Below are positions 1,255 to 33,805 of a stretch of DNA of 64,000 nucleotides, one piece after another. The position numbers were made by a program, and so were the translations under genes. The notes below the pieces were generated by a model. That model searched no databases. It was not told the origin of the DNA and saw only the letters and a list, made by a program, of their open reading frames with translations. The stretch lies in the IMG/VR virus record IMGVR_UViG_3300046542_000248, positions 1-64,000 of that record, one strand, 5' to 3'. Each line of letters begins with the position of its first letter. Position 1 is the first letter of the stretch.

Positions 1255-1812
1255 ATGAAAGATTTATCTGAAAAGATTCATCAAGTTGTAGCCAATCATT
1301 TTACGGCTTTTGAAGTGATCATTGACCCTGATCACGAGAACGATGTTATGTATAAACTAAAGCTTGATAAGCGAATGAACGTAACGGGGATTGCGATATT
1401 TCCTAAAATTATTGCAAATGTAATTAAGGAAAACTTCACAATCTTCGAACGAATACTCTACGGCAAAAAGATTCAAGATGCCGCTGTACTGGTATTATCT
1501 TCTACTATTTCTAATCTTACAAAATCCAGAGATTGTCTTGAATCGCTGGCAAATCATATCAGAACTGATATTCAAACTGAACTAGAGTACGAGCAATTGA
1601 AACCTCAGCTTGAAGCAACGCTTGCAAAACTTTCTAACTTGGTAATTCCCTATCAGGATAGAAATAAATATCTGATTCAACCTAACATTACAGTTAACTT
1701 AGAATCTAAGCTCCCTGTTATCTTTTCTAACATTGAGCTTAACAGCTTCATGAATGTAATTGGGTATAGACCAGAGAAAAATAGTAGAGGGAAGGTGTTA
1801 CCTTGGCAGTAG
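1255..1812 (+). CDS. Hypothetical protein upstream of RNAP beta' subunit
   Basis: GGAGG SD 8 nt before ATG 1255; stop overlaps the start of the next gene. Confidence 0.75.
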   Translation: MKDLSEKIHQVVANHFTAFEVIIDPDHENDVMYKLKLDKRMNVTGIAIFPKIIANVIKENFTIFERILYGKKIQDAAVLVLSSTISNLTKSRDCLESLANHIRTDIQTELEYEQLKPQLEATLAKLSNLVIPYQDRNKYLIQPNITVNLESKLPVIFSNIELNSFMNVIGYRPEKNSRGKVLPWQ

Positions 1813-3320
1813 CAACACTTGAAAAGATGTCGAACGGTGATGTCATTGACTTAGGAGATGTTAAGCAATTTAAACTTCCTAAGGTAGAAAGACATTTTGA
1901 AAAGTATGGAAAAGCTGTTACATCTGAACGGCTATTGAAACTTAATTTAGATGAAGAAGCCAAGCGGCGTATCAGGGATGAGAAAGATTTTCTCATCACT
2001 AATGCAGTTGCGGTTGAAAAGAACGGAACTAAAACCATGGACGGTATATTCTCTCCTAAGTTCGGTCATACACAATTCGATGATCAGCTTGGGACTAAAG
2101 ACATGTATCGCTGCCGTTGTGGTAATTTAGCAGGTGCAATTTACTTAGGAGAACTATGCCCTAAGTGTGATACTGATGTAGCATTTATTGATGCGGATCT
2201 ATCCGTTATGGGTTGGATTCCATTGAAAGAATATGCGATCATCAATGCAGGTATGTTTATCCATCTTCAAGATTTCATTGGTAAGACAGAAATTAGAAAC
2301 ATCCTGAAAGTGGATGTCTCTAAAATGGATTCCAATGGTAATTTGAAATATGAAAGAACAGCAAAATCTCCATACGCACATATTGGTATGTCAGAATTTA
2401 GAGAGAAGTTTGATGAGATTATCGACTTCTATCTTAAGCGATTCCCTAAGAAACGGGAATTGTACGATTTAATTCAGGAGTTTAAAGATTGTGTATTTAC
2501 ATCTCACATTCCTGTATACAGCTCAATCCTTCGTCCTCGTATTGAAGCTAATGAGAAGATTCGTTCATTCAAAGCGAATACTTATTACGATACGATCATG
2601 AAGCAATATGAATTAATCATGCTTGATGTAGGTAATATCTTAACAATCCTACCAGCTCTATTCGAGATTCAATATGAATACATGGAACTATATGAGTTCA
2701 TCGTTGAATCTTATACTGGTAAAGAAGGTTTATTCAGATCACAATTTGGTGGGATTCGAATCGACTATGGTGCACGGTCAGTTATCATCAATGGTAAAGA
2801 TCTTAAACCAGATGAAGTTGATATCCCTTATGTATCTGCAATTACCTTCCTTGAACTTGAAATCTTGTACTTATTACGGAAGCTTGATGACATTACCGAG
2901 AATGAAGCTTATATGATTCTCAATAAAGCAATGAGAGAATTTAATCCTAAGATTCATGCTCTATGTCAGAATATCATTAGTAAAAGTAAGACTCCGATGA
3001 ACGTATTGGTTAATAGACCACCATCCCTATCGGATAGATCATTCCGACTTCTGCGAGTTCGTAAGGTTAAGAATAACATCGACGATCTTACACTTAGCAT
3101 TAGCCCAAGTCTTTTGGATGGATTTGCAGGAGATTACGATGGTGACTCCTTGGCTTATATTCCACTCAAAGATTGGAGACTTATCAAGACATTCGAGCTT
3201 ACACTCGGACCAAGATACAACTATATCTCTAGAACCAATGGTAAGTACAGCGGACGTATGGCGTTCATTAAAGACTATGCTATCGTATTGTCTGAACTCT
3301 ATTCGCTTAGTGCTGCCTAG
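1803..3320 (+). CDS. rpoC: Phage multisubunit RNA polymerase beta' N-terminal subunit, probably non-virion (nvRNAP)
   Basis: DGIFSPKFG, Zn ribbon CRCG...CPKC, RIDYGARSVI, VLVNRPPSL and catalytic FAGDYDGD (NADFDGD equivalent); ends shortly after the catalytic loop, as in split jumbo-phage beta'. Confidence 0.9.
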   Translation: MAVATLEKMSNGDVIDLGDVKQFKLPKVERHFEKYGKAVTSERLLKLNLDEEAKRRIRDEKDFLITNAVAVEKNGTKTMDGIFSPKFGHTQFDDQLGTKDMYRCRCGNLAGAIYLGELCPKCDTDVAFIDADLSVMGWIPLKEYAIINAGMFIHLQDFIGKTEIRNILKVDVSKMDSNGNLKYERTAKSPYAHIGMSEFREKFDEIIDFYLKRFPKKRELYDLIQEFKDCVFTSHIPVYSSILRPRIEANEKIRSFKANTYYDTIMKQYELIMLDVGNILTILPALFEIQYEYMELYEFIVESYTGKEGLFRSQFGGIRIDYGARSVIINGKDLKPDEVDIPYVSAITFLELEILYLLRKLDDITENEAYMILNKAMREFNPKIHALCQNIISKSKTPMNVLVNRPPSLSDRSFRLLRVRKVKNNIDDLTLSISPSLLDGFAGDYDGDSLAYIPLKDWRLIKTFELTLGPRYNYISRTNGKYSGRMAFIKDYAIVLSELYSLSAA

Positions 3321-9618: not shown

Positions 9619-11199
9619 TTAAAATTTAGCAACTCTTGAAAGGTTTTGGAATACGGGGATTCCGTCGCCAGGCTTCGGTTGCTTCGTCATTTGGTAGACT
9701 GTTTGGACGAAGTCCCTCTGAATGATTCTAGAGTTCTGTCCAATGAGCGTCATGATGTACTTCTTATCATTCATATATCTAGCAGCATCTTCATTGGCTT
9801 CTTCTGTAAGAGCGGCAGCCAGTGTAAGCATATCACCATCATAATCTCCACCCAATCCTGGTAGATAACTATTATGAACGTGAAGAGTATCAATAAATGA
9901 AATACTACTATTCTTATTGATCTCAATGTCTGGATAATAATCATAGTACTTATCACCAATCAATACAGATATAGTTTTCTTAGTAGTAAGAATAGTAAAT
10001 TTAGAAGGATTTACACCAAAGTTATCTTCAATTGGATAACGAGTGAAGTAAACGTGCTTTTCAGATAATCTGTCGTTACACACAATGAATAGGATATCTG
10101 TCCAAGTCAATGGGCGTGTTACAGAAGTTTGAGCTTGACCAAATCTTCCTGTCAAATATAGATTACCTTTTCTTCCTTCTTCATTTTCAGGAAGTTCGAT
10201 AGCTTTGAATCTGGAAGAAGTACCGTAGATGAACTTTTTGATCATCTTAATGATATATTCTTCAGAAGTATAATATTCGGGATTTGTTAATGTGAGATAC
10301 TCAACCTCACCTTTTTCATTCCTATATGGGTATTTACCCGATAGTTGGAATTCATTTTCTAAAAACTCTTTTACACCATGAATTACAAATGGCATAAAGA
10401 TAGCACAGATACTGGCAAGAGGAACACCAATTCGTCCAAATCTAACTTGAACTTGATCGTAAGTTTCTCCTCTGATAATTGGTGCAGAGATTACTAGTCG
10501 AGCACCTAAGTCTGTATTCTTACCCATTACAAACTTTTTAAAAGTACCATTCTTTGCTCTAAGTTGAGAATCAATGATTTGGTCATGAATCTCATTCAGA
10601 GTAAATTGGATACGAGCTTTGGAGATATTGGATGTTAGACCATATTGCGCTTGTTGAGTTACGCTGTTAACCTGACGAATAATGAATAGATATTTATCGT
10701 TCAATTCATCGTAAGAAGGACGTCCCTCTTCATTATAGTTTACATCACGATAGAAAGCAGGTAGAACGATCCAAGAAGATACCCAGGAGTTCTCTCTATC
10801 TGCTAAGTTCTTAATTCTTTCAGTAGCGAAGACCGACTTACGTTCTTTGAACTCAAGTTTATCCCAGTTATCATATAGGAAATCAAGCCCTGTTTCACCA
10901 TTAGGATCAGGAGTTAATTTCCCATTTTTAATGGAAAATGTCTGTGTTCCTGTAGCACAACTCTCGAAATTCCTATCTAATCGACTAAGATTATAGAACG
11001 TAAGAGGATGTAGATAATGTCCTTTTAAATCAATAAATGCTGGAATGTTCTGACGCTCATAAGAGGTTTGACCGAAGATTCCATAAGAGAATAGAGAATC
11101 ATCCGTTGGCAATCCTTTATCAATAGGAATTGGTCCAGAAACAGGTCTTAGCCCGTTAATAGCAACAACTCTATCAACCCGTGCTTTATGAAGTTTCAA
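9619..11199 (-). CDS. rpoC: Second phage RNA polymerase beta' N-terminal subunit, probably virion RNAP (vRNAP)
   Basis: LFSYGIFG, HYLHP, VLPAFYRD, MGKNTDLGARLVIS, FTRYP and catalytic LGGDYDGD; no Zn ribbon; co-transcribed behind an AACA-N6-TA promoter. Confidence 0.88.
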   Translation of the reverse strand: MKLHKARVDRVVAINGLRPVSGPIPIDKGLPTDDSLFSYGIFGQTSYERQNIPAFIDLKGHYLHPLTFYNLSRLDRNFESCATGTQTFSIKNGKLTPDPNGETGLDFLYDNWDKLEFKERKSVFATERIKNLADRENSWVSSWIVLPAFYRDVNYNEEGRPSYDELNDKYLFIIRQVNSVTQQAQYGLTSNISKARIQFTLNEIHDQIIDSQLRAKNGTFKKFVMGKNTDLGARLVISAPIIRGETYDQVQVRFGRIGVPLASICAIFMPFVIHGVKEFLENEFQLSGKYPYRNEKGEVEYLTLTNPEYYTSEEYIIKMIKKFIYGTSSRFKAIELPENEEGRKGNLYLTGRFGQAQTSVTRPLTWTDILFIVCNDRLSEKHVYFTRYPIEDNFGVNPSKFTILTTKKTISVLIGDKYYDYYPDIEINKNSSISFIDTLHVHNSYLPGLGGDYDGDMLTLAAALTEEANEDAARYMNDKKYIMTLIGQNSRIIQRDFVQTVYQMTKQPKPGDGIPVFQNLSRVAKF

Positions 11200-14430: not shown

Positions 14431-14444
14431 AATAATATATATTT
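14431..14444 (-). promoter_or_regulatory. Putative early promoter
   Basis: Minus strand AAATATATATTATT. Confidence 0.7.
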
Positions 14445-17324: not shown

Positions 17325-17687
17325 TTACACCGTAGACACTGTTAGTAGCACATCATCGCCATTTGTATTGAACAGAACAATCTCGTTAAAGCTCGGAGAC
17401 TGTATTCCGATATATAATTCCGAATCTTTTAGTTCGATAATCATATCATTGATAGAGAAATCACAGTATTCTTCTACCTGCTTATTTATCACAACTTTAA
17501 GATCATTGGCTACATCTTCAGAGAATGATACACGATATTGACCTATATCTATTCCCTTTTCCAAATCATCAGAATGATCACCTGGTTTCATAACCAATAA
17601 AATATATAACTGCATAGCCATCGCAAATGCGCCAGTATATACTTTACCTTTTGAAAATTCATCAATTTCAAATCCAACGTCTTTCAT
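17325..17687 (-). CDS. gp25-like baseplate wedge protein
   Basis: 120 aa; LLVMKPGDH...GIDIGQY...INKQVEEY matches the gp25/GpW pattern (L.t.pGe.P..GI.l..y). Confidence 0.6.
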   Translation of the reverse strand: MKDVGFEIDEFSKGKVYTGAFAMAMQLYILLVMKPGDHSDDLEKGIDIGQYRVSFSEDVANDLKVVINKQVEEYCDFSINDMIIELKDSELYIGIQSPSFNEIVLFNTNGDDVLLTVSTV

Positions 17688-18334: not shown

Positions 18335-18346
18335 AACAGCCAATTA
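18335..18346 (+). promoter_or_regulatory. Putative late promoter AACA-N6-TA (rightward)
   Basis: AACAgccaatTA; back-to-back with the leftward copy. Confidence 0.65.
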
Positions 18347-18375: not shown

Positions 18376-19737
18376 GTGAAATGTCCAATTTGCAGGAAAC
18401 CTATTCAATATAAAAAGGATATGATTCATCATCTCCATTTAAGACATGCAAGAGAACTTCCTGAGAATGTGAGTCCGGCAAAGTTTCTATTCTCTTCAAC
18501 CCATGGTGGAAGAACTGGTGGCTCTTGTCGAGTATGTAACAGTGAAACTTTATTCGATGAGAAAATCGGTAGACCTAGAGTATTTTGTACTAATCCTAAA
18601 TGTAAAGAGGCATTTGCCACTATTGCACAATCCAGGAACATAGAGAAATATGGAGTTCCACATCTATTAAACAACCAAAAACATCAGATGTTTATGCTTT
18701 CTAAAAGAAAGATCTCTGGTGAATATGATTGGTCTGATGGAAGAACTAAGATTCCATACGTTGGATCTTATGAAAGAAAATTTTTTGAGTTCTTAGATAA
18801 CTTCATGGATTTCGATCCATCGGTAATTCATTCCCCATGTCCTTTTGATATTCAATATGAATTTGAAGGTGAAATGCATACGTATACACCTGATGTTTAT
18901 ATTGATATCGTTGATCTCGTCGTTGAGATTAAACATGGTGGTGACAATCCTAATAATCATCATAAGATTCAAGCTGTTGATGTAGCTAAGGATAAAGCTA
19001 AGCAGGAAGCTATTAAAAAATCCACTAATCACAATTTCATTAAGATTGTGGATAATAAATTCGGACCTTTCCTCAAAGCAATGTTTAAATTAGTAGAAGA
19101 TGAAAAGTATGAAAGCAAACAAAGATTGTTTGTGATTAATGAATCTTCTCAAACTATAGCTGCTATAAGAGAAGCAGCCTCATCACCTCCACTTACTGGG
19201 ATTCCTGTTGCCCCTAAAGCTGATCCTGATTCTAGATATAATACACAGGTTTCTGTGAATATGTTCACTGCACTGGGTGGAGCTGCAAAATGTCCATCTA
19301 TGAAAGAAACTCAATCTCTTGCTAGTATTCATCCAATAGTCACTGGCTTTATTGGTCGAGAGATTGACGGTAATGAAAAGCCACTCTATATTACAGTATT
19401 TAATGATAGCAGTGATAATTACACAATTGGTGTAGCTATTGATCGCATGCGTGATCCTGCAATATATGAAAATAGTAAATTTATAACTTTTCTAGGTTCA
19501 GGTGATAGATTGGATGGTCAGGATTACTCAGTCTATAAGTATATTGGCAACGGTAATTATGATGAAAAACAATTCCTTAAAGCCTGTTATGAAACTACTG
19601 AACATCCATATGGTTCAGATGTAGAGGCATTTACTACTATATTAGAATCCGTATTCAAAAGACCTTTATATAATGTGGGTCAATTACTTATGAATCCAGA
19701 ATTCGTTAAAATTAAACAAGGAAGGGTTGAATACTAA
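18376..19737 (+). CDS. C2H2/C4 zinc-finger plus PD-(D/E)xK (TnsA-like) nuclease fused to a C-terminal domain of unknown function
   Basis: CPIC..HLHLRH, CRVC, CTNPKC; GSYERKF...YTPDVY...VVEIK; INE|SS and IRE|AA sites separate the halves. Confidence 0.7.
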   Translation: MKCPICRKPIQYKKDMIHHLHLRHARELPENVSPAKFLFSSTHGGRTGGSCRVCNSETLFDEKIGRPRVFCTNPKCKEAFATIAQSRNIEKYGVPHLLNNQKHQMFMLSKRKISGEYDWSDGRTKIPYVGSYERKFFEFLDNFMDFDPSVIHSPCPFDIQYEFEGEMHTYTPDVYIDIVDLVVEIKHGGDNPNNHHKIQAVDVAKDKAKQEAIKKSTNHNFIKIVDNKFGPFLKAMFKLVEDEKYESKQRLFVINESSQTIAAIREAASSPPLTGIPVAPKADPDSRYNTQVSVNMFTALGGAAKCPSMKETQSLASIHPIVTGFIGREIDGNEKPLYITVFNDSSDNYTIGVAIDRMRDPAIYENSKFITFLGSGDRLDGQDYSVYKYIGNGNYDEKQFLKACYETTEHPYGSDVEAFTTILESVFKRPLYNVGQLLMNPEFVKIKQGRVEY

Positions 19738-20807
19738 TGAAGAAAGATCAGTTAACGAGTATCCCAGCTAATCAATTCGGTCTTCCAAAAGATCGTAAGT
19801 TTCCAATGCAAGATGAGAAACATCTTAAAGCTGCTATCGGTTATTTTTATACAGCTAAACCAGAGAAGCGTAAAGAGCTTGCAAAGAATATTATCCGCAG
19901 GCATGGTGAGCTTAAATCATCTATTAAGATCTCCAAGAAGAATCCTTTGTTCAAATTCATTCCAGAAGAGATGAAGAATCTTAATGAATCTTCTCTATTT
20001 GAGAATGTAAGTTCTGAACATTTTGGACAACTATTTGGACCTAGAGGAAGGGAGATCATCGAATCTCTTATAGCTAAAGATGGTGTATCATGCGTTGATG
20101 ATATCGACTCTCAAGTCCCAAATGATTACAGAAATAAGCAGCGATTTGTAAATACTGTTAAATCCTATATTCTTAATGAAATGGGAGATAACTACCCAGT
20201 AGTTTATATGGATTATCCAGTAACTAAACAAGATCTTCGAGGAAATAACGGCGGTATCAGAACTCTATCTGAAACTTCCATTGTACTTGATTATAGATCT
20301 TACTTGAATGAATCTACTAGTATTGATGTGATTACAGAAATGAGTCATATTCAATTTGGTGCTCTATTACGTGAATGGGATGAGAATTATAGAGCTGGTC
20401 ATCGTAATCATACTTATGACCGCTTAGTAATTGAATCGTGGAAGACACGAGTTCATGATTTACTCACTGAAGGTGTTGATGAGGTTGGTAGTGTTAAATA
20501 CAAGGCTCAGCATCATGCTGATATTGAAACTAAACAAAAGCTTATTGATCTTGGTATTAAAGATCCTGATGAATATAAGCGGAATCATATTGATGGAGAT
20601 ATCTATGAAAGATCTCCTATTCATAAATCTGCTGAAATTGGATTTGACATTACCAAAGATATTATTGACAAGCATCATAATGAAAGTCATGGCAGCAATG
20701 TTATTGACGGTTCATTAAGTTTGAAACTATACACATATAAAGATGATGTATACATCCATCAAAAGGGTGTAGATATTACTGTAGATGAACTATGGAGGAT
20801 GGACTAA
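19737..20807 (+). CDS. Putative internal head protein with N-terminal DUF6582-like domain
   Basis: FGLPKDRKFPMQDEKHLKAAI motif; several L/I-x-E|S/M/G sites (LNE|SS, LNE|ST, ITE|MS, LTE|GV). Confidence 0.6.
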   Translation: MKKDQLTSIPANQFGLPKDRKFPMQDEKHLKAAIGYFYTAKPEKRKELAKNIIRRHGELKSSIKISKKNPLFKFIPEEMKNLNESSLFENVSSEHFGQLFGPRGREIIESLIAKDGVSCVDDIDSQVPNDYRNKQRFVNTVKSYILNEMGDNYPVVYMDYPVTKQDLRGNNGGIRTLSETSIVLDYRSYLNESTSIDVITEMSHIQFGALLREWDENYRAGHRNHTYDRLVIESWKTRVHDLLTEGVDEVGSVKYKAQHHADIETKQKLIDLGIKDPDEYKRNHIDGDIYERSPIHKSAEIGFDITKDIIDKHHNESHGSNVIDGSLSLKLYTYKDDVYIHQKGVDITVDELWRMD

Positions 20808-22135
20808 TGGAATTCTTTCCTTGCTTTATAGACATTGACAAACATCTTTCTACAGTTGCATTTGGATATAGTAATACAGAAGCTACTAAGTATGATATTG
20901 AAGAATACTTTAAATCTAGTCAGTTAAATACTATATTTGATAAGGATACAATCTTTCGTCTTGTGGATGATTATATGAATTACTATTATTTCATTAGGAG
21001 ACTTTTAAGATGGAGTAAGTGGTATATCTATGATAAGAATCCAGTTAACAAACCAGAAGGTAAAGAAACTGACGAGGATATGATTATCAAATGGAATACA
21101 ACTGTTAAGCAGCTATTCGAAAAACTTCGAATGTCTAATAGTTTCTATGAAAAAGTACTCTATACTCAATTGCTTAACGATCATCTTTGGAATCCTAAAT
21201 TCGATCCTATGAATCCTAAGATTCAGGAATATAACAGAGATAAATTATTAAGAGTATCTACTAAAGGTAGTGTAATAACTGAAGCTTCTGGGAAGGATGT
21301 TCACTTTAAACTTTACCATGTGAGTGAAGAAAACTTAAATGGTAAAGTATTAACTCCTAGAATTCCTGATAACTTCTTAACTAAGCATGGCTACGAAGAA
21401 AACAAAACTCCTAGAGTTAGTTTCAGTACATCTATAGATGGATGTTTAGTTGGACTTTCACAGAATATTAAGGATAAAGAATTCTTTGTATTCGAACCTG
21501 ATGATTACTCTAAAATTCAAGTTAAAGGTGTCAATGTAGCTTTGGTGCCTGACGCTCAATTAACTCATGAAAAATGGGTAACTACTTCTGTTAAGCTTAA
21601 GTTAGTTGGAAAGATAAAAGTGCATGATGCTAAAGATCCTGCATTAACTTATACGTATGGTCCTGATAATACTAAAGCAGAAATGTATGCTTGGAATTGG
21701 GAGCATGTAAAAGAAAAAATACATGAAGCCACACTGGAATATGATAGAGATTCTTACAAGCTCATGACTATGAAGTTAGAATCTAATATCATTGATATCT
21801 TTAATAATAGCACAGTTAAGTTACAAGCATTAACTGAAGCTGATGATATTGGAGGTATTAAACTTGAAACTGCTAAGCTTGAATTTATCAATACTTTGAT
21901 AGAAGCTAATTCTACTTTTTCGGATACTAAGCCTGATAGTAAGCTATTCAGTATTCGTGGAACTATACGAAAAGAGCTTCATAAGTTAATTAATAAATCT
22001 GTGGGCGTTGTAACACTCAAAGAATCTAGTTTTGATCTTAATAGTTTCTATGAGTCTACTGCATTCTATACTGCTGCTATTAATGAGTATAGACATCTAC
22101 AGAATTACAAGGAATTCATTAAAGTTAGTTTATAA
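20807..22135 (+). CDS. Putative internal head protein carrying an Arr-like ADP-ribosyltransferase-fold domain
   Basis: TAATG overlap and GGAGG SD; LYHVS...PRIP...RVSFSTSIDGCL...FVFEP...THEKW...LKLVGKI; domain flanked by ITE|AS and IHE|AT. Confidence 0.6.
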   Translation: MEFFPCFIDIDKHLSTVAFGYSNTEATKYDIEEYFKSSQLNTIFDKDTIFRLVDDYMNYYYFIRRLLRWSKWYIYDKNPVNKPEGKETDEDMIIKWNTTVKQLFEKLRMSNSFYEKVLYTQLLNDHLWNPKFDPMNPKIQEYNRDKLLRVSTKGSVITEASGKDVHFKLYHVSEENLNGKVLTPRIPDNFLTKHGYEENKTPRVSFSTSIDGCLVGLSQNIKDKEFFVFEPDDYSKIQVKGVNVALVPDAQLTHEKWVTTSVKLKLVGKIKVHDAKDPALTYTYGPDNTKAEMYAWNWEHVKEKIHEATLEYDRDSYKLMTMKLESNIIDIFNNSTVKLQALTEADDIGGIKLETAKLEFINTLIEANSTFSDTKPDSKLFSIRGTIRKELHKLINKSVGVVTLKESSFDLNSFYESTAFYTAAINEYRHLQNYKEFIKVSL

Positions 22136-22174: not shown

Positions 22175-23095
22175 TTATGCAACTGATTTTTTGATTCGCA
22201 GCAAGAAGGACTCACTGCATCCAAATTCACCAATGATATCAATATTTCTAATACCTTCTATGATTCTGGATTTTATAGCATCAATAGTTTCAGTGTTATA
22301 TCTATTATTCTCTTTGACTGGATTTTTAATATCAAATCTACTAGAGATTCCTTTATATTTCTTACCCAAATATACGGAAGATAGAATCTTTTTGAATGAT
22401 CGTCTGTAGGACATCTCTATTTGTAATGAGATACAAATTCCTTCATAACTCCAATTATCTTCTTCCATAAGTTTACAGGATCTTTCTATAATGTCTTTAC
22501 TAGCAATATTATCTCTGAATTTGATAGGTTCAGAGTTTTTAGCAACTCTTTTATATTTAGTCAGGATAGAACTATACTTAATATTCTTATCCACAGACAT
22601 TAGAATTTCAAATTTCTTATAGTCGGTATCTTTATCATATCCCAATTCTCTTAGGATGGTATGATAATTCCACGGTTTCATCATTAACGACCCAATCTTG
22701 TGAACTTCACCTTCTGTAAATCCTGCTTTATTTCTTTTAGATAATGCAGCATAGGTCACATCAGAATCTGACGCCCATTTAAGATTATGAGAGAAGTTAT
22801 TAGATTTATCACCATCAATATGAAGGACTTGATTAAAATTGTTTGGGTTTTTAATAAATGCCAAGGCAACTAATCTATGGAGTCCTCTATACGTCTTATT
22901 GAATAAACCTTTCTCCTCTAGTTGGACTCTCTCATATCCTCGATCATTTCTGTTGGATTGAATATATTTATCAGAATCTTTATCCAAGATTCGTCCGTAA
23001 GTAGAGATTACATAACGAGCACTTTTAACTAATATTCCATCAATATCCAAGATTAATGGTTTAACACATTCTTTACGCCTAAAAACTTTTATCAT
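22175..23095 (-). CDS. Free-standing HNH homing endonuclease
   Basis: GLHRLVALAFIKNP...VLHIDGDKSNN...NLKW (HNH_3 type) with helical C-terminal repeats; oriented opposite to its neighbours. Confidence 0.85.
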   Translation of the reverse strand: MIKVFRRKECVKPLILDIDGILVKSARYVISTYGRILDKDSDKYIQSNRNDRGYERVQLEEKGLFNKTYRGLHRLVALAFIKNPNNFNQVLHIDGDKSNNFSHNLKWASDSDVTYAALSKRNKAGFTEGEVHKIGSLMMKPWNYHTILRELGYDKDTDYKKFEILMSVDKNIKYSSILTKYKRVAKNSEPIKFRDNIASKDIIERSCKLMEEDNWSYEGICISLQIEMSYRRSFKKILSSVYLGKKYKGISSRFDIKNPVKENNRYNTETIDAIKSRIIEGIRNIDIIGEFGCSESFLLRIKKSVA

Positions 23096-23176: not shown

Positions 23177-23207
23177 AATAATATATCACAACCAAATATA
23201 TATTATT
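23177..23207. promoter_or_regulatory. Divergent pair of early-type promoters
   Basis: Minus strand GATATATTATT (23177-23187) and plus strand AAATATATATTATT (23194-23207). Confidence 0.65.
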
Positions 23208-23247: not shown

Positions 23248-23877
23248 TTGAGTACTGAGCTTCTGGACAGATTACTAGCCGATAAAGAAAAGTTCTATCA
23301 ATCAGTTACTAAAGAACTAGATCAGTACTATTATGATTTGCAAGACATGGTTTGTGTTAAATTCATTAAAACTAAATCTAATGATTATGTTATTGAATTC
23401 CATGTCGCCAATGATGATTTCGATACCCCAATACGTTTAATGGGTATTGCAATTGAAGCTGCTAATGATTTAATGACTGAAATTATTCATAACATTAATA
23501 GGTTACCGGCTGTATTGAGAGCTTATAATATCGACATGTCTAAGTCTGGTGCAAATCAAACTACTATAGAATATGTCGCTAAAATGACTAAGATCTGTAT
23601 TACATTTATTGAGAAATATGAAGTATGCTTTTTAGCATATGATGATTTGAATAAACCAGAACGGCAGATTAACTTTGTTCTTATTGGTAATTTATCAGCA
23701 AAGCCAATTAAGAGAGGTTATCCGTTATCTAGATTAGCATTGCGTCATACTATACGCAAGTTATTTCGAGACGCAGGTAAAACAAGTGTTCTCGATGTAA
23801 TGATGAGAAGATATTCAGAAATATTTATGGAACTGTGTATTGTAAGAAATGAAGATAATATTCCGCTATATCATTAA
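23248..23877 (+). CDS. Hypothetical protein
   Basis: AAAGGA SD, TTG start, 209 aa. Confidence 0.7.
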   Translation: MSTELLDRLLADKEKFYQSVTKELDQYYYDLQDMVCVKFIKTKSNDYVIEFHVANDDFDTPIRLMGIAIEAANDLMTEIIHNINRLPAVLRAYNIDMSKSGANQTTIEYVAKMTKICITFIEKYEVCFLAYDDLNKPERQINFVLIGNLSAKPIKRGYPLSRLALRHTIRKLFRDAGKTSVLDVMMRRYSEIFMELCIVRNEDNIPLYH

Positions 23878-29392: not shown

Positions 29393-29845
29393 ATGCACGA
29401 ATTTACAGAAAAAGAACAGGAAGCGATTATTAATTATATTAAATACGAGTCAGGGTTTACACTCCCTGACTGGTTTATGAAAGGTAATATTAAACTTGAT
29501 CCTATTAAAGTACCCGATCCAGATATGTGGTATGGTGTGTGTACATTTTATTTCTCATGTGATACCATGCCATCTGATGGAGAACCTTATTGGGTTTCAA
29601 TTCTTAAACACGAAGTTATTAGAATCTTACGAGATGCAAACAGACCACCTATTATTATTTGGGATGTGAAGAATAATAAACCATGTGAAGATGATAAGGT
29701 CTTTATTAATCGTCGTGGTGAAATCTGTCGAATACTCCCACTTTATGCAAATTTCTTTCACGAACAACCACTCGGTTCAGAAGAATTTGTTATCAAATAT
29801 AGAAAGGAAAATGAATCGAATGAATCTAACTCTATTCTCAAATAA
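29393..29845 (+). CDS. Hypothetical protein
   Basis: AAGGAG SD, 150 aa. Confidence 0.65.
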   Translation: MHEFTEKEQEAIINYIKYESGFTLPDWFMKGNIKLDPIKVPDPDMWYGVCTFYFSCDTMPSDGEPYWVSILKHEVIRILRDANRPPIIIWDVKNNKPCEDDKVFINRRGEICRILPLYANFFHEQPLGSEEFVIKYRKENESNESNSILK

Positions 29846-30434
29846 TAGTGATTTATGTTTAGCATGGGAATGCGAATTTCAAGGTACAAAAGTAGATATC
29901 GTATATGGTGATTTTAGAGATGATTATAATAGAATGAATATCAGTGCTCTTGTAAGTCCTGCAAATTCTTTCGGTCTTATGGATGGAGGATTCGATCAAG
30001 TTATCATTGATATCGTTGGTCCAAAGGTAATGGAAAGTGTACAAAGACGTATTAATCTTGATTATGGTGGGGAGCAACCTGTTGGGACTGCTTTTGCAGT
30101 TAAAACAGATCATTTTTCAATCCCATTAGTAATCCATTCACCAACTATGAGAACACCAATGAATATAGTTGGTACAAATAACTGCTTCCATTCTACTAGA
30201 GCAGCATTACTTGTGGGTAGAAGATTGTCCGCAAGTGATCCAAATTTTAGAAATGTTGCAATGACTGGAATGGGAACACTTACTGGTGGTCTTGATTTCA
30301 ATTTTGCCGCAAGACAAATGAGATTGGCGTATGATGTCACTATGAATTTCAATGTCACTGAACTACCAACGTGGAGTGGTGTGGATAATCTTGGTACATT
30401 ACTCCTTCAAACTCATATTGGAAGGAGGTTATAA
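29820..30434 (+). CDS. Macrodomain protein (ADP-ribose binding / ADP-ribosyl hydrolase)
   Basis: GDF...ALVSPANSFGLMDGGFD...GEQPVG...IHSPTMR...VAMTGMGTLTGG; start 29811 or 29820. Confidence 0.88.
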   Translation: MNLTLFSNNSDLCLAWECEFQGTKVDIVYGDFRDDYNRMNISALVSPANSFGLMDGGFDQVIIDIVGPKVMESVQRRINLDYGGEQPVGTAFAVKTDHFSIPLVIHSPTMRTPMNIVGTNNCFHSTRAALLVGRRLSASDPNFRNVAMTGMGTLTGGLDFNFAARQMRLAYDVTMNFNVTELPTWSGVDNLGTLLLQTHIGRRL

Positions 30435-31128: not shown

Positions 31129-31527
31129 TTGAGTAGCCCGCTTATAGTGTTCGATACTCGATTCGGAAACGTGAGAAGATTTGTTAAGAAGCTAGGGATG
31201 AGAGCTGTCTTCCTTAGAGAAGTTGAGAAAGTGGAAGAACCGTATATACTTATTACTTATACTGATACGTTTGGAACTGTTCCAATTACAACTCAGAATT
31301 TTTTACATAATAACAGCCAACTTCTTCTTGGTGTAGCATCAAGTGGTAATAGAAGATGGCATGAAACATACTGCAAAGCAGCAGATGTAATTTCAGATGA
31401 ATACGGAATACCTGTCATTTCCAAGTTTGAATTATCAGGGAATGTCGATACAATAAAATCATTTATCGAAAGGGTTGGTCAAATTGACTACAGCGTCATT
31501 AGAAAACATGAATTACTACGAGCTTAA
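31129..31527 (+). CDS. nrdI: Class Ib ribonucleotide reductase flavodoxin NrdI
   Basis: GNVRRFVKKL...EPYILITYT...G.VP...LLGVASSGNRRW...KFELSG. Confidence 0.95.
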   Translation: MSSPLIVFDTRFGNVRRFVKKLGMRAVFLREVEKVEEPYILITYTDTFGTVPITTQNFLHNNSQLLLGVASSGNRRWHETYCKAADVISDEYGIPVISKFELSGNVDTIKSFIERVGQIDYSVIRKHELLRA

Positions 31528-33805
31528 TAATAGTATTATGCTCAAAGATGAGGATGGCTTCTTGCGTCTTGATAATGACAAGCTTGCCATTGTAAAATAT
31601 CTTGAATACGTGGATGAAAACCGTTTGAAGTTTACAAACGTTGTTCAACGTATGAAATACCTTGTTGAGCAGCATTCAGTCGTTAAAAAGACGATGGATG
31701 TAGAAAAAATCATCGGCTATCTTGAAAAGATAAAAGTGGATATATCAGATCCATACTATTCTAAAATACTTGATGATGTTATGGCTAATCTTCCTGAAGA
31801 ATGTTTTATGGAAGAAACCACTCTTCCATTCTATGATAAAAATATTATTGCTAAGTATACCGATGAGCAGATCGTCGAGTTACATACATTAGCTTCCGAT
31901 TATCAATTCAATTATAAAACTTTTATGCAAGCATACAAATTCTATGAAGATTATGCCCTTAAGAGTGATGACAAAAAAACATTCTTGGAAACTTTTGAAG
32001 AGCACAATGTTATCGTTTCTATGTATCTTGGAAATGGTGATTATGAAAAAGCAAAAGAATTCTTAGCTTCTTTTATGGAGCAACGAGTACAACCTGCAAC
32101 TCCAACATATCTAAATGCTGGTAGAGCACGTCGTGGTGAAATGGTAAGTTGTTTCTTACTTGCACTTGATGATTCTACTGAATCTATTCAACACAATCTT
32201 ACTAACATGGCTAATCTTAGTCGTATTGGTGGTGGGGTTGCATTTGATGTAAGTAACCTTCGTGCATTCGGCGATCCAATCATGGGTGTTGAAGAAGCAG
32301 CAAAAGGTCCTTTACATGTATTGCTTATTGCTGAAAGAATCTTCTCTTTCTATGATCAACTCGGTCAACGTTCTGGTAGTGGAGCAGGTTATATTAACGT
32401 ATTCCATCCAGATGTAAATATGGTAATTGACTCCAAGAAAGAAAATGCTGATGATGCTACTCGTCTGAAATCATTGTCTCTTGGATTAACTGTACCACAG
32501 AAGTTCTACGATCTTGCAGAAGCAGATCTAGACTTCTACGGATTCAGTCCTTACGATGTGAAGAAATACTACGGTATGGCATTCACAGAAGTTGATTTCG
32601 ATATCTTCTATGATCTATTCATGATGGATGATCGTATTAGAAAAACTAAGATTATGAGTGCTCGTGCATTCCTTAACAAGATTGCTCAAGTTCAACTCGA
32701 ATCTGGTTATCCTTATATCTTCAATATCACTAATGCTAATAAACAGCATGCTCTTAAAAACGAAGGTCGAATTTTGATGACTAATCTTTGTACTGAAATT
32801 ATGCAGTTGCAAGAAGTTTCAAAAATCGGCAGATACTTCGAGCAAGATGATATTCGACGTGATATTTCTTGTAACCTTGATTCAATCAATATTACTAACA
32901 CAATGCTAAGCAGAGATATTGCTGGTACTGTATATACTGCAATGGATGTAGTTACAGCAGTATCAGATTTTACAAGAATCAGTACAGTTCCAGGTGTACT
33001 TAAAGCCAATGATGAAATGCATTCAGTTGGCGTTGGGGCAATGGATCTTAATGGTTATCTTGCTAAAAATATGATCAAGTATGAATCATTCGAAGCTCGT
33101 GACTTTGCAAGAACTTTCTTCATGATGATGAACTTCTACAGTTTGAAGCGTTCATGTGAAATTGCAAAAGAACGTGGTATTACATTCAAAGGATTCAAAG
33201 GTTCTGAATATGATACAGGTGTATATTTCACTAAGTATCGTAACAAAAACTATGCTCCTTTATCTGCTAAAGCAATTGCACTATTTGAAGGAATCTACAT
33301 TCCTACTCCTCAAGATTGGATCGAACTTGAAGCAGATATCAAAGAACATGGTTTATACCATGCTTATCGCTTAACAATCGCTCCTACTCAAAGTATTAGC
33401 TATGTACAGAATGCTACGAGTTCTGTAATGCCGATTATCGACGTTGTCGAAATTCGTTCGTACAAAAAAGGTAAGATCTTCTATCCAGTACCTCATTATT
33501 CCCGTGAGAATAAATGGTATTATAAATCTGCTTATCAAATGGATCAAAGAGCAGTTATTGATATGATTGCTGTAATCCAAGAGCATATTGATCAAGGCAT
33601 TAGCTGTATCTTACATGTAAACAAAGATGTAGCTACTGGTGATCTTGCAGGTCATTACCTTTATGCCAATTATAGAGGTTTGAAATCTCTTTACTACACT
33701 AGGACTAACCGTCCTAAGCAAGAAAAAATTAAAACAGGCATTCGCAGAGTTATGAGACAGGTTGAATCGGATAACGAACCTGGCTGCGTATCCTGTAGCG
33801 TATAA
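31484..33805 (+). CDS. nrdE: Class Ib ribonucleotide reductase alpha subunit
   Basis: QPATPTYLNAGR, VSCFLL, GGGVA, TNLCTEI, APTQSISY, GLKSLYYTR, C-terminal CVSC; start uncertain (31484 TTG or 31508 ATG). Confidence 0.95.
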   Translation: MTTASLENMNYYELNNSIMLKDEDGFLRLDNDKLAIVKYLEYVDENRLKFTNVVQRMKYLVEQHSVVKKTMDVEKIIGYLEKIKVDISDPYYSKILDDVMANLPEECFMEETTLPFYDKNIIAKYTDEQIVELHTLASDYQFNYKTFMQAYKFYEDYALKSDDKKTFLETFEEHNVIVSMYLGNGDYEKAKEFLASFMEQRVQPATPTYLNAGRARRGEMVSCFLLALDDSTESIQHNLTNMANLSRIGGGVAFDVSNLRAFGDPIMGVEEAAKGPLHVLLIAERIFSFYDQLGQRSGSGAGYINVFHPDVNMVIDSKKENADDATRLKSLSLGLTVPQKFYDLAEADLDFYGFSPYDVKKYYGMAFTEVDFDIFYDLFMMDDRIRKTKIMSARAFLNKIAQVQLESGYPYIFNITNANKQHALKNEGRILMTNLCTEIMQLQEVSKIGRYFEQDDIRRDISCNLDSINITNTMLSRDIAGTVYTAMDVVTAVSDFTRISTVPGVLKANDEMHSVGVGAMDLNGYLAKNMIKYESFEARDFARTFFMMMNFYSLKRSCEIAKERGITFKGFKGSEYDTGVYFTKYRNKNYAPLSAKAIALFEGIYIPTPQDWIELEADIKEHGLYHAYRLTIAPTQSISYVQNATSSVMPIIDVVEIRSYKKGKIFYPVPHYSRENKWYYKSAYQMDQRAVIDMIAVIQEHIDQGISCILHVNKDVATGDLAGHYLYANYRGLKSLYYTRTNRPKQEKIKTGIRRVMRQVESDNEPGCVSCSV

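Follow-up and report, generated by a model that had tools for sequence, protein, structure and literature searches.

A predicted ADP-ribosyltransferase-fold module between candidate head-protease sites in a multi-module protein of an AR9/PBS1-like jumbo phage

The 64,000-nucleotide stretch analyzed here (the window; positions 1 to 64,000 of IMG/VR record IMGVR_UViG_3300046542_000248) is part of a phage genome of 246,901 bp and 35% GC that was judged complete. Within it, the plus-strand open reading frame ORF3 (20807..22135, 442 amino acids (aa)) encodes a three-module protein whose middle module is predicted to adopt the fold of the ADP-ribosyltransferase (ART) superfamily, and this module lies between two candidate cleavage sites of the type recognized by phage head proteases. 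We see an even chance that the ART-fold module of ORF3 is packaged in the head, cut free by the head protease and injected with the DNA. Coordinates are those of the window; 'own genome' coordinates refer to the full 246,901-bp phage genome.

Architecture and predicted fold of ORF3

The reading frame at 20807-22135 is stop-free and contains every motif that the original prediction had quoted from it. The ~148-aa segment singled out there, 21284-21727, corresponds exactly to A160-E307 (148 aa), beginning after V-I-T-E159 and ending at K-I-H-E307, which is followed by A308-T. Since orthologues begin at the same M-E-F-F, the start is likely to be the one at 20807, not the upstream ATG at 20792. 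In the full-length AlphaFold2 (AF2) model, the protein falls into three separately folded parts (predicted template modeling score, pTM, 0.43): an N-terminal helical module (aa 28-124, 20888..21178 (+)) with a predicted local distance difference test (pLDDT) value of ~80, a beta-rich ART-fold core (aa 166-303, 21302..21715 (+), pLDDT 97), and a C-terminal helical bundle (aa 314-441, 21746..22129 (+)). The parts are joined by two linkers with pLDDT below 50, one spanning aa 122-165 (21170..21301 (+)), which is probably flexible and contains the upstream candidate site, and one spanning aa 304-316, which contains the downstream candidate site. Residues 1-21 are conserved among orthologues and have low model confidence, and no cleavage motif follows them.

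When the domain was modeled alone, its pLDDT was 92. Searching the PDB with Foldseek returned Arr (9IAF, probability 0.87; 2HW2, 0.77), cholera toxin A and TreX as the top named matches, with weak E values of ~0.1. An unbiased search of 48,161 PDB chains gave ART-superfamily members for nearly all of its top 50 matches, and nearly every top match of Foldseek, VIA-align and the Atlas is a member of that superfamily. By shape, the ESM Atlas listed enterotoxin A, DUF6886, Arr-ms, RES, FRG and DUF3990 after the family's own clusters. By language-model features, Arr-ms accounts for 66 of the 100 named clusters that come closest, with a score of 0.95 and 171-177 shared features. The structural neighbors also include RES toxins, NatT and Tpt1. 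The individual scores are modest, yet the unbiased list is near-exclusively ART, and we regard this as decisive for the fold. Four independent structure searches agree that the middle module, as modeled, has the ART-superfamily fold with its split beta-sheet core.

The closest relatives of ORF3 (P0002-P0005 and P0013, ~300 aa) align to its residues 1-165 and 310-442 and have no middle module. Because the contig of P0002 is fully syntenic, with the same flanking genes, P0002 is the ORF3 orthologue, and the syntenic orthologue in the relatives L001/L002 lacks the ART-like module. In further relatives, the ART-like module is combined with the N or the C module in varying orders; neither the N nor the C module matched an informative family in Pfam or language-model searches. 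Two ideas about the origin of this arrangement were tried and rejected. A self-splicing insertion such as an intein does not fit, as the module has an ART and not a Hint fold and the junctions E159/A160-S and H306-E307/A308 (here and below, the slash marks the candidate scissile bond) lack the residues required, Cys/Ser/Thr at the N-junction and His-Asn plus Cys/Ser/Thr at the C-junction. A 16-nt imperfect direct repeat (21226-21241/21736-21751, 14 of 16 positions identical), whose copies encode E-Y-N-R-D and E-Y-D-R-D and flank a 510-nt segment with the linker and the ART-like module, was considered as an insertion footprint, and ~0.5 such pairs are expected by chance. The GC content shows no step at the ART-like module.

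The module belongs to a widespread family. The middle segment matches phrog_10766 (E 3e-9) and phrog_5043 (E 8e-8), both of unknown function, and finds 12 proteins in a 90%-clustered collection and 741 representatives at E<=1e-3 (408 at E<=1e-10) in a library clustered at 50%. The smallest carrier, of 146 aa, consists of the domain alone, and the largest has 2928 aa; carriers have one to four copies, with two to four copies in 28 of the 150 best-matching proteins; the phage's own genome has a single copy. In large carriers, the partners are SNF2 helicase, GNAT acetyltransferase, NUDIX, metallophosphatase, DUF362 and transglutaminase-like modules. No Pfam model matched ORF3 or 58 relatives beyond noise, and neither the protein nor the family profile matched a PDB sequence. 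Whole ORF3 found nothing at 1e-5 by tblastn against 50,697 phage records, and the domain alone gave only weak matches there, to small hypothetical proteins of jumbo phages, two of which (Erwinia AH06 gp79 and Ea35-70 gp168) a hidden Markov model confirmed as homologues. A single-domain search for related loci in IMG/VR gave no match. BFVD entries matched in Erwinia phages Ea35-70 and Stratton, Klebsiella phage Eowyn, Pseudomonas phages Noxifer and SL2, and Rhizobium phage RHph_Y68; all are named 'uncharacterized' save two (acetyltransferase, cysteine peptidase), whose names reflect co-resident domains. The family is thus large, lies outside Pfam, and is not functionally annotated in any phage record or BFVD entry examined. 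Genetic study is possible through the stand-alone copies that cultured phages of Erwinia, Klebsiella, Pseudomonas and Rhizobium carry.

Candidate cleavage sites at module borders

Both candidate sites, I157-T158-E159/A160 (21275..21283 (+)) and I305-H306-E307/A308 (21719..21727 (+)), lie in the low-confidence linkers, and three more matches fall within the C-terminal bundle (LTE344/A, LIE366/A and LKE406/S). The five [LIVM]xE[SA] sites of ORF3 compare with 0.83 in composition shuffles (P ~0.001), and the probability of finding the motif in both linkers by chance is ~0.0009.

The same motif marks the borders of the module across the family. In about 150 relatives, with a site counted within a 32-aa window, [LIVM]xE[SA] was found at 80 of 113 N-terminal borders (71%) and 67 of 120 C-terminal borders (56%), compared with 12.6% of random windows. 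In 10-aa bins at the borders its density is ~4.4 per 100 aa versus 0.54 overall, an 8-fold enrichment on both sides, and the domain interior is far below the border value. When the P1 residue is changed to Asp, Gln, Lys or Asn, just 1-8 borders (7% or less) have a match. At the borders, P1' is Ser in ~85% of cases, P3 is I, V or L, and P2 is most often Asn; the phiKZ-type motif [SAG]xE shows no border enrichment in these relatives. In some large carriers (P0012, P0028 and P0057) sites stand at successive module junctions. Those of P0012 are at the metallophosphatase/GNAT junction, the GNAT/ART-like junction and the end of the ART-like module, and P0057 has 20 sites over 2928 aa, mostly 100-250 aa apart and mostly outside domain cores. 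Together, these patterns point to [LIVM]xE[SA] as a functional linker motif, with proteolysis after Glu as the simplest reading. The proposal that head-protease-type I-x-E sites bracket the ART segment was borne out, in that the sites are present, Glu-specific, enriched at the borders in ~150 relatives and situated in low-confidence linkers.

The phage encodes a protease that could act on such sites. Its head-maturation protease (own genome 154104-154970(-); phrog_207, phrog_3014) is of the gp21 family and is 28% identical to AR9 g114, annotated as 'prohead core scaffold protein and protease'. All characterized proteases of the gp21 family cut after Glu (PMC5694885). The C-terminal tail of the phage's protease carries three matches (LME214/S, VLE228/A and LEE244/S), mirroring SPN3US gp245, whose auto-cleaved tail has three motifs as well (PMC5694885). 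Of the sites in the major capsid protein (own genome 156638-158281, phrog_20655), LFE30/S, LAE63/S and LTE97/A fall in the first 100 residues and just one in the 447 that follow, and the first two are in register with LKE/S and LSE/A of AR9 despite an overall identity of 25%. Given a Glu-cutting family and the motif in both the capsid propeptide and the protease tail, recognition of [LIVM]-x-E/[SA] by this protease is probable and well grounded.

Outside the window, motif-rich proteins are encoded at own genome 229249-231543 (-), 172592-173098 (+), 241822-242991 (+), 196070-197302 (-) and 240648-241721 (+). One of them (764 aa) has 15 sites and several have 3-5 in the first 60 residues, as head-internal propeptides do. 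None has a PHROG match, and additional substrates of the protease or ejection proteins may be among them.

Conserved residues of the module

Column statistics were taken from 151 distinct module copies. Strand 1 carries Y-H-x-S (cf. Y-H-G-T of Arr and diphtheria toxin), in which Y170 is conserved at 86% and S173 at 98%, while position 171 (H171, 21317..21319 (+)) is His in 52%, Phe in 44% and Arg in 2% of copies. Next come P184 (98%), P187 (97%), N189 (99%) and E197 (99%). In strand 2 (R203-S205, 21413..21421 (+)), R203 is present in 100% of copies; position 205, which corresponds to the Tyr of Arr and the Ser of TreX and is Ser in ORF3, is Cys in 71% and Ser in 27%. F206 follows at 93%, and of the two serines of S207-T-S209 in ORF3, position 207 is Ser in 54% and Ala in 34%, and position 209 Ser in 81% and Thr in 11%. 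The start of strand 5 reads V-P-D249-x-x-x-T253-x-E255-x-W257 (21551..21571 (+)), with D249 at 99%, T253 at 96%, and E255 and W257 at 100%. E255 is the first residue of the strand formed by residues 255-258 and is the candidate catalytic Glu.

In TreX, the triad is made up of an R that ends strand 1, an S midway along strand 2 and ExE at the start of strand 5 (PMC11606950). The equivalent positions here, assigned by strand position and hhalign and not by superposition, are H171/S173, S205 and T253-x-E255, and ORF3 itself fills the three canonical positions with His, Ser and Glu. Across the family, the conserved set S173, N189, E197, R203, D249, T253, E255 and W257 is unlike the classical H-Y-E/D and R-S-E triads. 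The invariant acidic residue of strand 5 argues for a working enzyme on an ART framework, and the variable His together with the additional invariant R203, E197 and N189 marks out a distinct family that may have a chemistry of its own. The S-x-S strand and the His that the original prediction had listed as hallmarks are not conserved across the 151 copies; its assignment of an ART domain is supported by the fold.

The phage, its cassette and the promoters

The original prediction had implied a T4-like setting. The genome encodes split multisubunit RNA polymerase subunits, and its closest cultured relatives are AR9/PBS1, Staphylococcus S6-like phages, Listeria phage LPJP1 and Yersinia phage phiR1-37, at an identity of just ~34%. 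In the window, split beta/beta'-like polymerase genes lie at 1803-3320 (+) and 9619-11199 (-) (phrog_2987, phrog_2986), which places the phage among jumbo phages of the phiKZ/AR9 type. By these genes and relatives it is classed as an AR9/PBS1-like jumbo phage instead of a T4-like one.

ORF3 is the last of three genes that overlap at their stop and start codons and that are kept as three genes in the relative L001. ORF1 (18376..19737 (+), 453 aa, GTG start) begins with a zinc-finger and endonuclease-like module (aa 1-240) resembling AR9 g233; its residues 1-239 match phrog_15137 at E 2e-45, and the identity to AR9 g233 is 37%. Directly after this domain, its linker carries VINE256/S and IRE266/A, followed by an extra 190-aa C-terminal module. 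ORF2 (19737..20807 (+), 356 aa) has a DUF6582-like N-terminal motif with a weak match to PF20223, directly followed by LNE84/S, and its later modules are parted by IIE109/S, LNE192/S and VIE233/S. In the relatives P0008, P0010 and P0028, modules of ORF1 and ORF2 are fused to the ART-like module, and P0010 has the DUF6582-like module. At a similarly arranged locus, L007 (a 255.8-kb scaffold) and L009 have single proteins of 2928 and 1996 aa; the synteny was assessed by comparing gene order, sizes and Pfam labels rather than by aligning sequences, and the match in L009 is less complete. The locus has divergent genes upstream and, in L007, PC4-like and family-B DNA-polymerase genes downstream. 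We hold with middling confidence that 18376-22135 is a late-expressed three-gene cassette of unrelated modules joined by flexible linkers with [I/V/L]-x-Glu/Ser or Ala.

Timing is suggested by promoter motifs. A late-type motif, AACA-GCCAAT-TA (18335..18346 (+)), lies 30 nt upstream of the ORF1 GTG and corresponds to the AR9 late-promoter consensus AACA-(6N)-TA/G (PMC5312081). AACA-N6-TA is enriched 3.3-fold in intergenic regions of the own genome and also precedes the head-protease gene and neighboring head-module genes; because the motif is short, it is only supportive of late timing. No early motif of the form A[AT]ATATATTAT was found upstream of ORF1-3. The AR9 early-promoter core is ATATATATTAT (PMC5312081), and this core occurs 34 times in the genome, 31 times between genes and typically 30-80 nt before starts. 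Exact copies in the window are at 23196, 25386, 26103 and 35053 (+) and at 14432 and 14991 (-), 30-55 nt before gene starts; they precede genes at 23248, 25420, 26138 and 35106 (+) and the minus-strand starts 14388 and 14949. These exact copies indicate that the phage shares the early promoter of AR9, which is read by the virion RNA polymerase. Taken together, the promoter motifs suggest late expression of the ORF1-3 cassette.

Other genes of the window were recorded alongside. Upstream of the cassette, the opposite strand carries a homologue of AR9 g231. A 120-aa gene at 17325-17687(-) was considered as a homologue of AR9 g232 ('base plate wedge') for its identical position and was set aside on a BLASTP E value of 0.53 and the lack of a PHROG match. 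An HNH/NUMOD4 homing-endonuclease-like gene (22175-23095 (-)) converges on ORF3; since it also occurs in a relative without the ART-like module, it is unlinked to the presence of the module. A Macro-domain gene (29685-30434 (+), PF01661 E 1.4e-9) lies 8 kb downstream of the ART-like gene, a placement conserved in the relative L001/L002. As Macro domains remove ADP-ribose, this protein may act on the chemistry of the ART-like module or counter host ARTs. The large subunit of a class I ribonucleotide reductase (31475-33805 (+)) shares ~50% identity with its counterparts in Paenibacillus, Brevibacillus and Cohnella, which hints at a Bacillota host. Five very large plus-strand ORFs (1011-1659 aa) occupy 42030-63646; two have tail-fiber-like and virion-structural matches, and the other three have no match or a weak one to a family of unknown function.

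Discussion

Under the proposed mechanism, the products of ORF1-3 would be made late alongside the head proteins, as the promoter motifs suggest, and would enter the prohead. There, the gp21-family protease would cut after Glu159 and Glu307, the positions to which motif conservation points, freeing a 148-aa ART-fold domain. If its fold is a guide to its activity, the freed domain would be ejected with the DNA and, early in infection, carry out a nicotinamide adenine dinucleotide (NAD+)-dependent modification of a macromolecule or small molecule of the host. There are precedents for parts of this route. T4 Alt and the internal proteins are ejection proteins processed by gp21 (PMC7411985). In AR9, the virion RNA-polymerase subunit g078 (L012 12476-15571) is annotated as a 'proteolysed protein' of which only the RNA polymerase domain is in virions, the other part being an HD phosphohydrolase; this documents the removal of a module from a packaged protein in this phage group, in a record that gives no cleavage site.

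Several observations weigh against this mechanism. AR9 g233, the homologue of the first module of ORF1, is not labeled a virion protein, the homologue of the same module in Staphylococcus phage DC4 is an entry in a genome-annotation table only and is not reported in virions, and the stand-alone homologue RAY gp169 is not among the proteins in the accessible part of a crude-lysate mass-spectrometry survey of RAY and Deimos-Minion. No T4-like N-terminal capsid-targeting peptide was recognized in ORF3. The neighbors of ORF3 are mostly early or metabolic genes (the early promoters at 23196, 25386 and 26103, the ribonucleotide reductase and the Macro gene), and the chance occurrence of the late motif in the intergenic region upstream of ORF1 is ~0.1. 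As for the chemistry, Phe replaces the canonical NAD-contact His in 44% of relatives and Cys or Ser occupies the Tyr/Ser position, and with these contact residues degenerate, the reaction may differ from ADP-ribosyl transfer. Nor does the module join the Arr family at the level of sequence: PF12120 (Arr-ms) had no match in ORF3 (E<=1), in 58 relatives (E<=10) or in the six-frame translation of the genome, and an hhalign comparison of the 151-member family with 23 Arr sequences from Bacilli gave a colinear alignment over 59 columns that is not significant (P = 0.06).

That alignment pairs Y-H-V-S with F-H-G-T, R-V-S-F-S-T-S with Y-I-Y-F-T-A-T and F-V-F-E-P with Y-L-V-E-P, and it sets Ser205 at the position of the Arr Tyr. 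This strand-2 Tyr is the 'Y' of the clade's H-Y-D pattern. The His-Tyr-Asp site of Arr is not reproduced in the module, where the Tyr position is Ser205 (mostly Cys in relatives) and the His varies, while D249, equivalent to the Asp, is conserved. By the Arr family's own criteria, the sequence of the module puts it outside that family. What remains of the Arr likeness first proposed is that no named family comes closer than Arr by Foldseek and language-model features, with colinear motifs; membership itself falls with the PF12120 and hhalign results.

The absence of virion reports for the AR9 g233 and Staphylococcus phage homologues, the lack of a recognizable capsid-targeting peptide and the position of the locus among early and metabolic genes would all suit a multi-domain enzyme that stays in the cytoplasm and is never packaged. 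The linkers would then be flexible junctions, sites of another protease, or shuffling joints like the VENN and DPxGL pre-toxin motifs of polymorphic toxins. We consider such an enzyme unlikely. The strict Glu at P1, I/V/L at P3 and Ser/Ala at P1' fit proteases of the gp21 family, the capsid propeptide and protease tail of the same phage bear the motif, and the promoter motif ahead of the operon is of the late type, with none of the early type. Another protease could be built in, as P0057 has a transglutaminase-like module with a papain fold and Iyer et al. proposed autoproteolysis of polyvalent proteins by in-built peptidases (PMC5512222), but most relatives, ORF1-3 included, have no peptidase module of their own. 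Shuffling joints meet the difficulty that four residues are too few to guide homologous recombination.

Whether packaged or not, the ART-fold module might also do something other than ADP-ribosylate protein or nucleic acid, as an NADase or NAD+ phosphorylase of the RES/MbcT type, a 2'-phosphotransferase-like enzyme, an Arr-like modifier of small molecules or a non-catalytic binder. The classical triads are degenerate in the family (His 52%/Phe 44%; Cys 71%/Ser 27%), the invariant R203, E197 and N189 are foreign to the classical motifs, and the neighboring RES toxins, NatT, Tpt1 and Arr perform chemistry other than protein ADP-ribosylation; the Macro-domain gene 8 kb downstream fits any NAD or ADP-ribose chemistry. 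Set against this, Glu255 at 100%, D249 at 99% and the Ser of strand-1 Y-x-x-S at 98% argue for an active enzyme on an ART framework, and ORF3's copy keeps His, Ser and Glu at the canonical positions. Such alternatives are rather improbable, without being negligible. Far more remote is the notion that an ordinary hypothetical protein shows both the ART likeness and the flanking sites by chance. Pfam gives no match, the structural scores are modest and short motifs are frequent, but the 741 homologues with invariant residues, structural matches that are almost exclusively ART-fold, a shuffle P of ~0.001 for the sites and their family-wide enrichment at borders effectively refute it.

Injected phage enzymes decide the first minutes of an infection, and to our knowledge few are known beyond T4 Alt and the virion RNA polymerases of N4 and phiKZ. 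If packaging and cleavage of the ART-fold module are confirmed, the four-residue linker motif would offer a simple way to recognize cleavable cargo modules in jumbo phages that have not been cultured and would predict the exact mature ends of each module, and the large ART-fold family, with its 741 clusters at 50% identity, would gain a fold assignment and candidate catalytic residues. We tentatively extend the idea, at less than an even chance, to AR9-like and other jumbo phages at large: they may make 'beads-on-a-string' effector polyproteins delimited by [I/V/L]-x-Glu/Ser, in which the capsid protease doubles as a polyprotein processor, as in eukaryotic RNA viruses, up to ~20 enzymes are released in the head, and a common bead is a new ART family, nearest to Arr, with the set S-N-E-R-D-T-E-W.

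Comparison with known systems

Head-packed ART effectors and polyvalent proteins are already known. The ART-fold family itself and the regular head-protease-type sites delimiting the modules of polyvalent proteins appear to be new; neither the family nor regular Glu linker sites were found described in the literature, a search that did not extend to the supplementary tables of the viral NAD survey. Arr (PF12120; 2HW2, 9IAF) resembles the module as a small (~140 aa) minimal ART fold and as its best Foldseek match in the PDB. The order of motifs is also alike, with aromatic-His-x-Ser/Thr in strand 1, x-F-S/T in strand 2, hydrophobic-V-x-E-P in strand 3 and P-D or D-P before strand 5. The phage module differs by its invariant R203, E197, N189, E255 and W257 and by a long C-terminal beta-hairpin, and whereas Arr is a stand-alone bacterial resistance enzyme, the phage module is embedded in multi-module proteins. 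The Rhs ART toxins of the TreX/Tre1 type (8S2M) differ as well: TreX has the classical R-S-ExE, and Rhs proteins are released by aspartyl autoproteolysis at DPxGL and delivered by the type VI secretion system, not by a phage head.

With T4 Alt and the internal proteins, the products of ORF1-3 would share late synthesis, placement in the prohead, cleavage after hydrophobic-x-Glu by a gp21-family protease and injection (PMC7411985). Alt, however, is an ART of the R-S-E (Alt/VIP2) type that loses only a short N-terminal targeting peptide, whereas the ART of ORF3 is of another family and would leave the middle of its protein by two cuts.

In polyvalent proteins, which are predicted to be packaged and injected, an ART beside GNAT is typical (Iyer et al. 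2017, PMC5512222). Like the polyvalent ART (ART-PolyVal PF18760, 'N4-ART'), the module described here is an ART-fold unit present once or several times per huge phage protein among unrelated enzymes (SNF2, GNAT, NUDIX). Relatives have it in proteins of 1996-2928 aa, and in the window the modules are split over three translationally coupled ORFs. PF18760 had no match in ORF3 or in 58 relatives, and the active-site pattern of the phage module is not H-Y-D. The processing differs too. Where the published model relies on in-built metallopeptidase or assemblin-like domains, the proteins described here carry regular head-protease-type Glu sites and mostly no peptidase module, so that, if the proposed cleavage holds, polyvalent-protein processing would gain a second route, the head protease, beside built-in peptidases.

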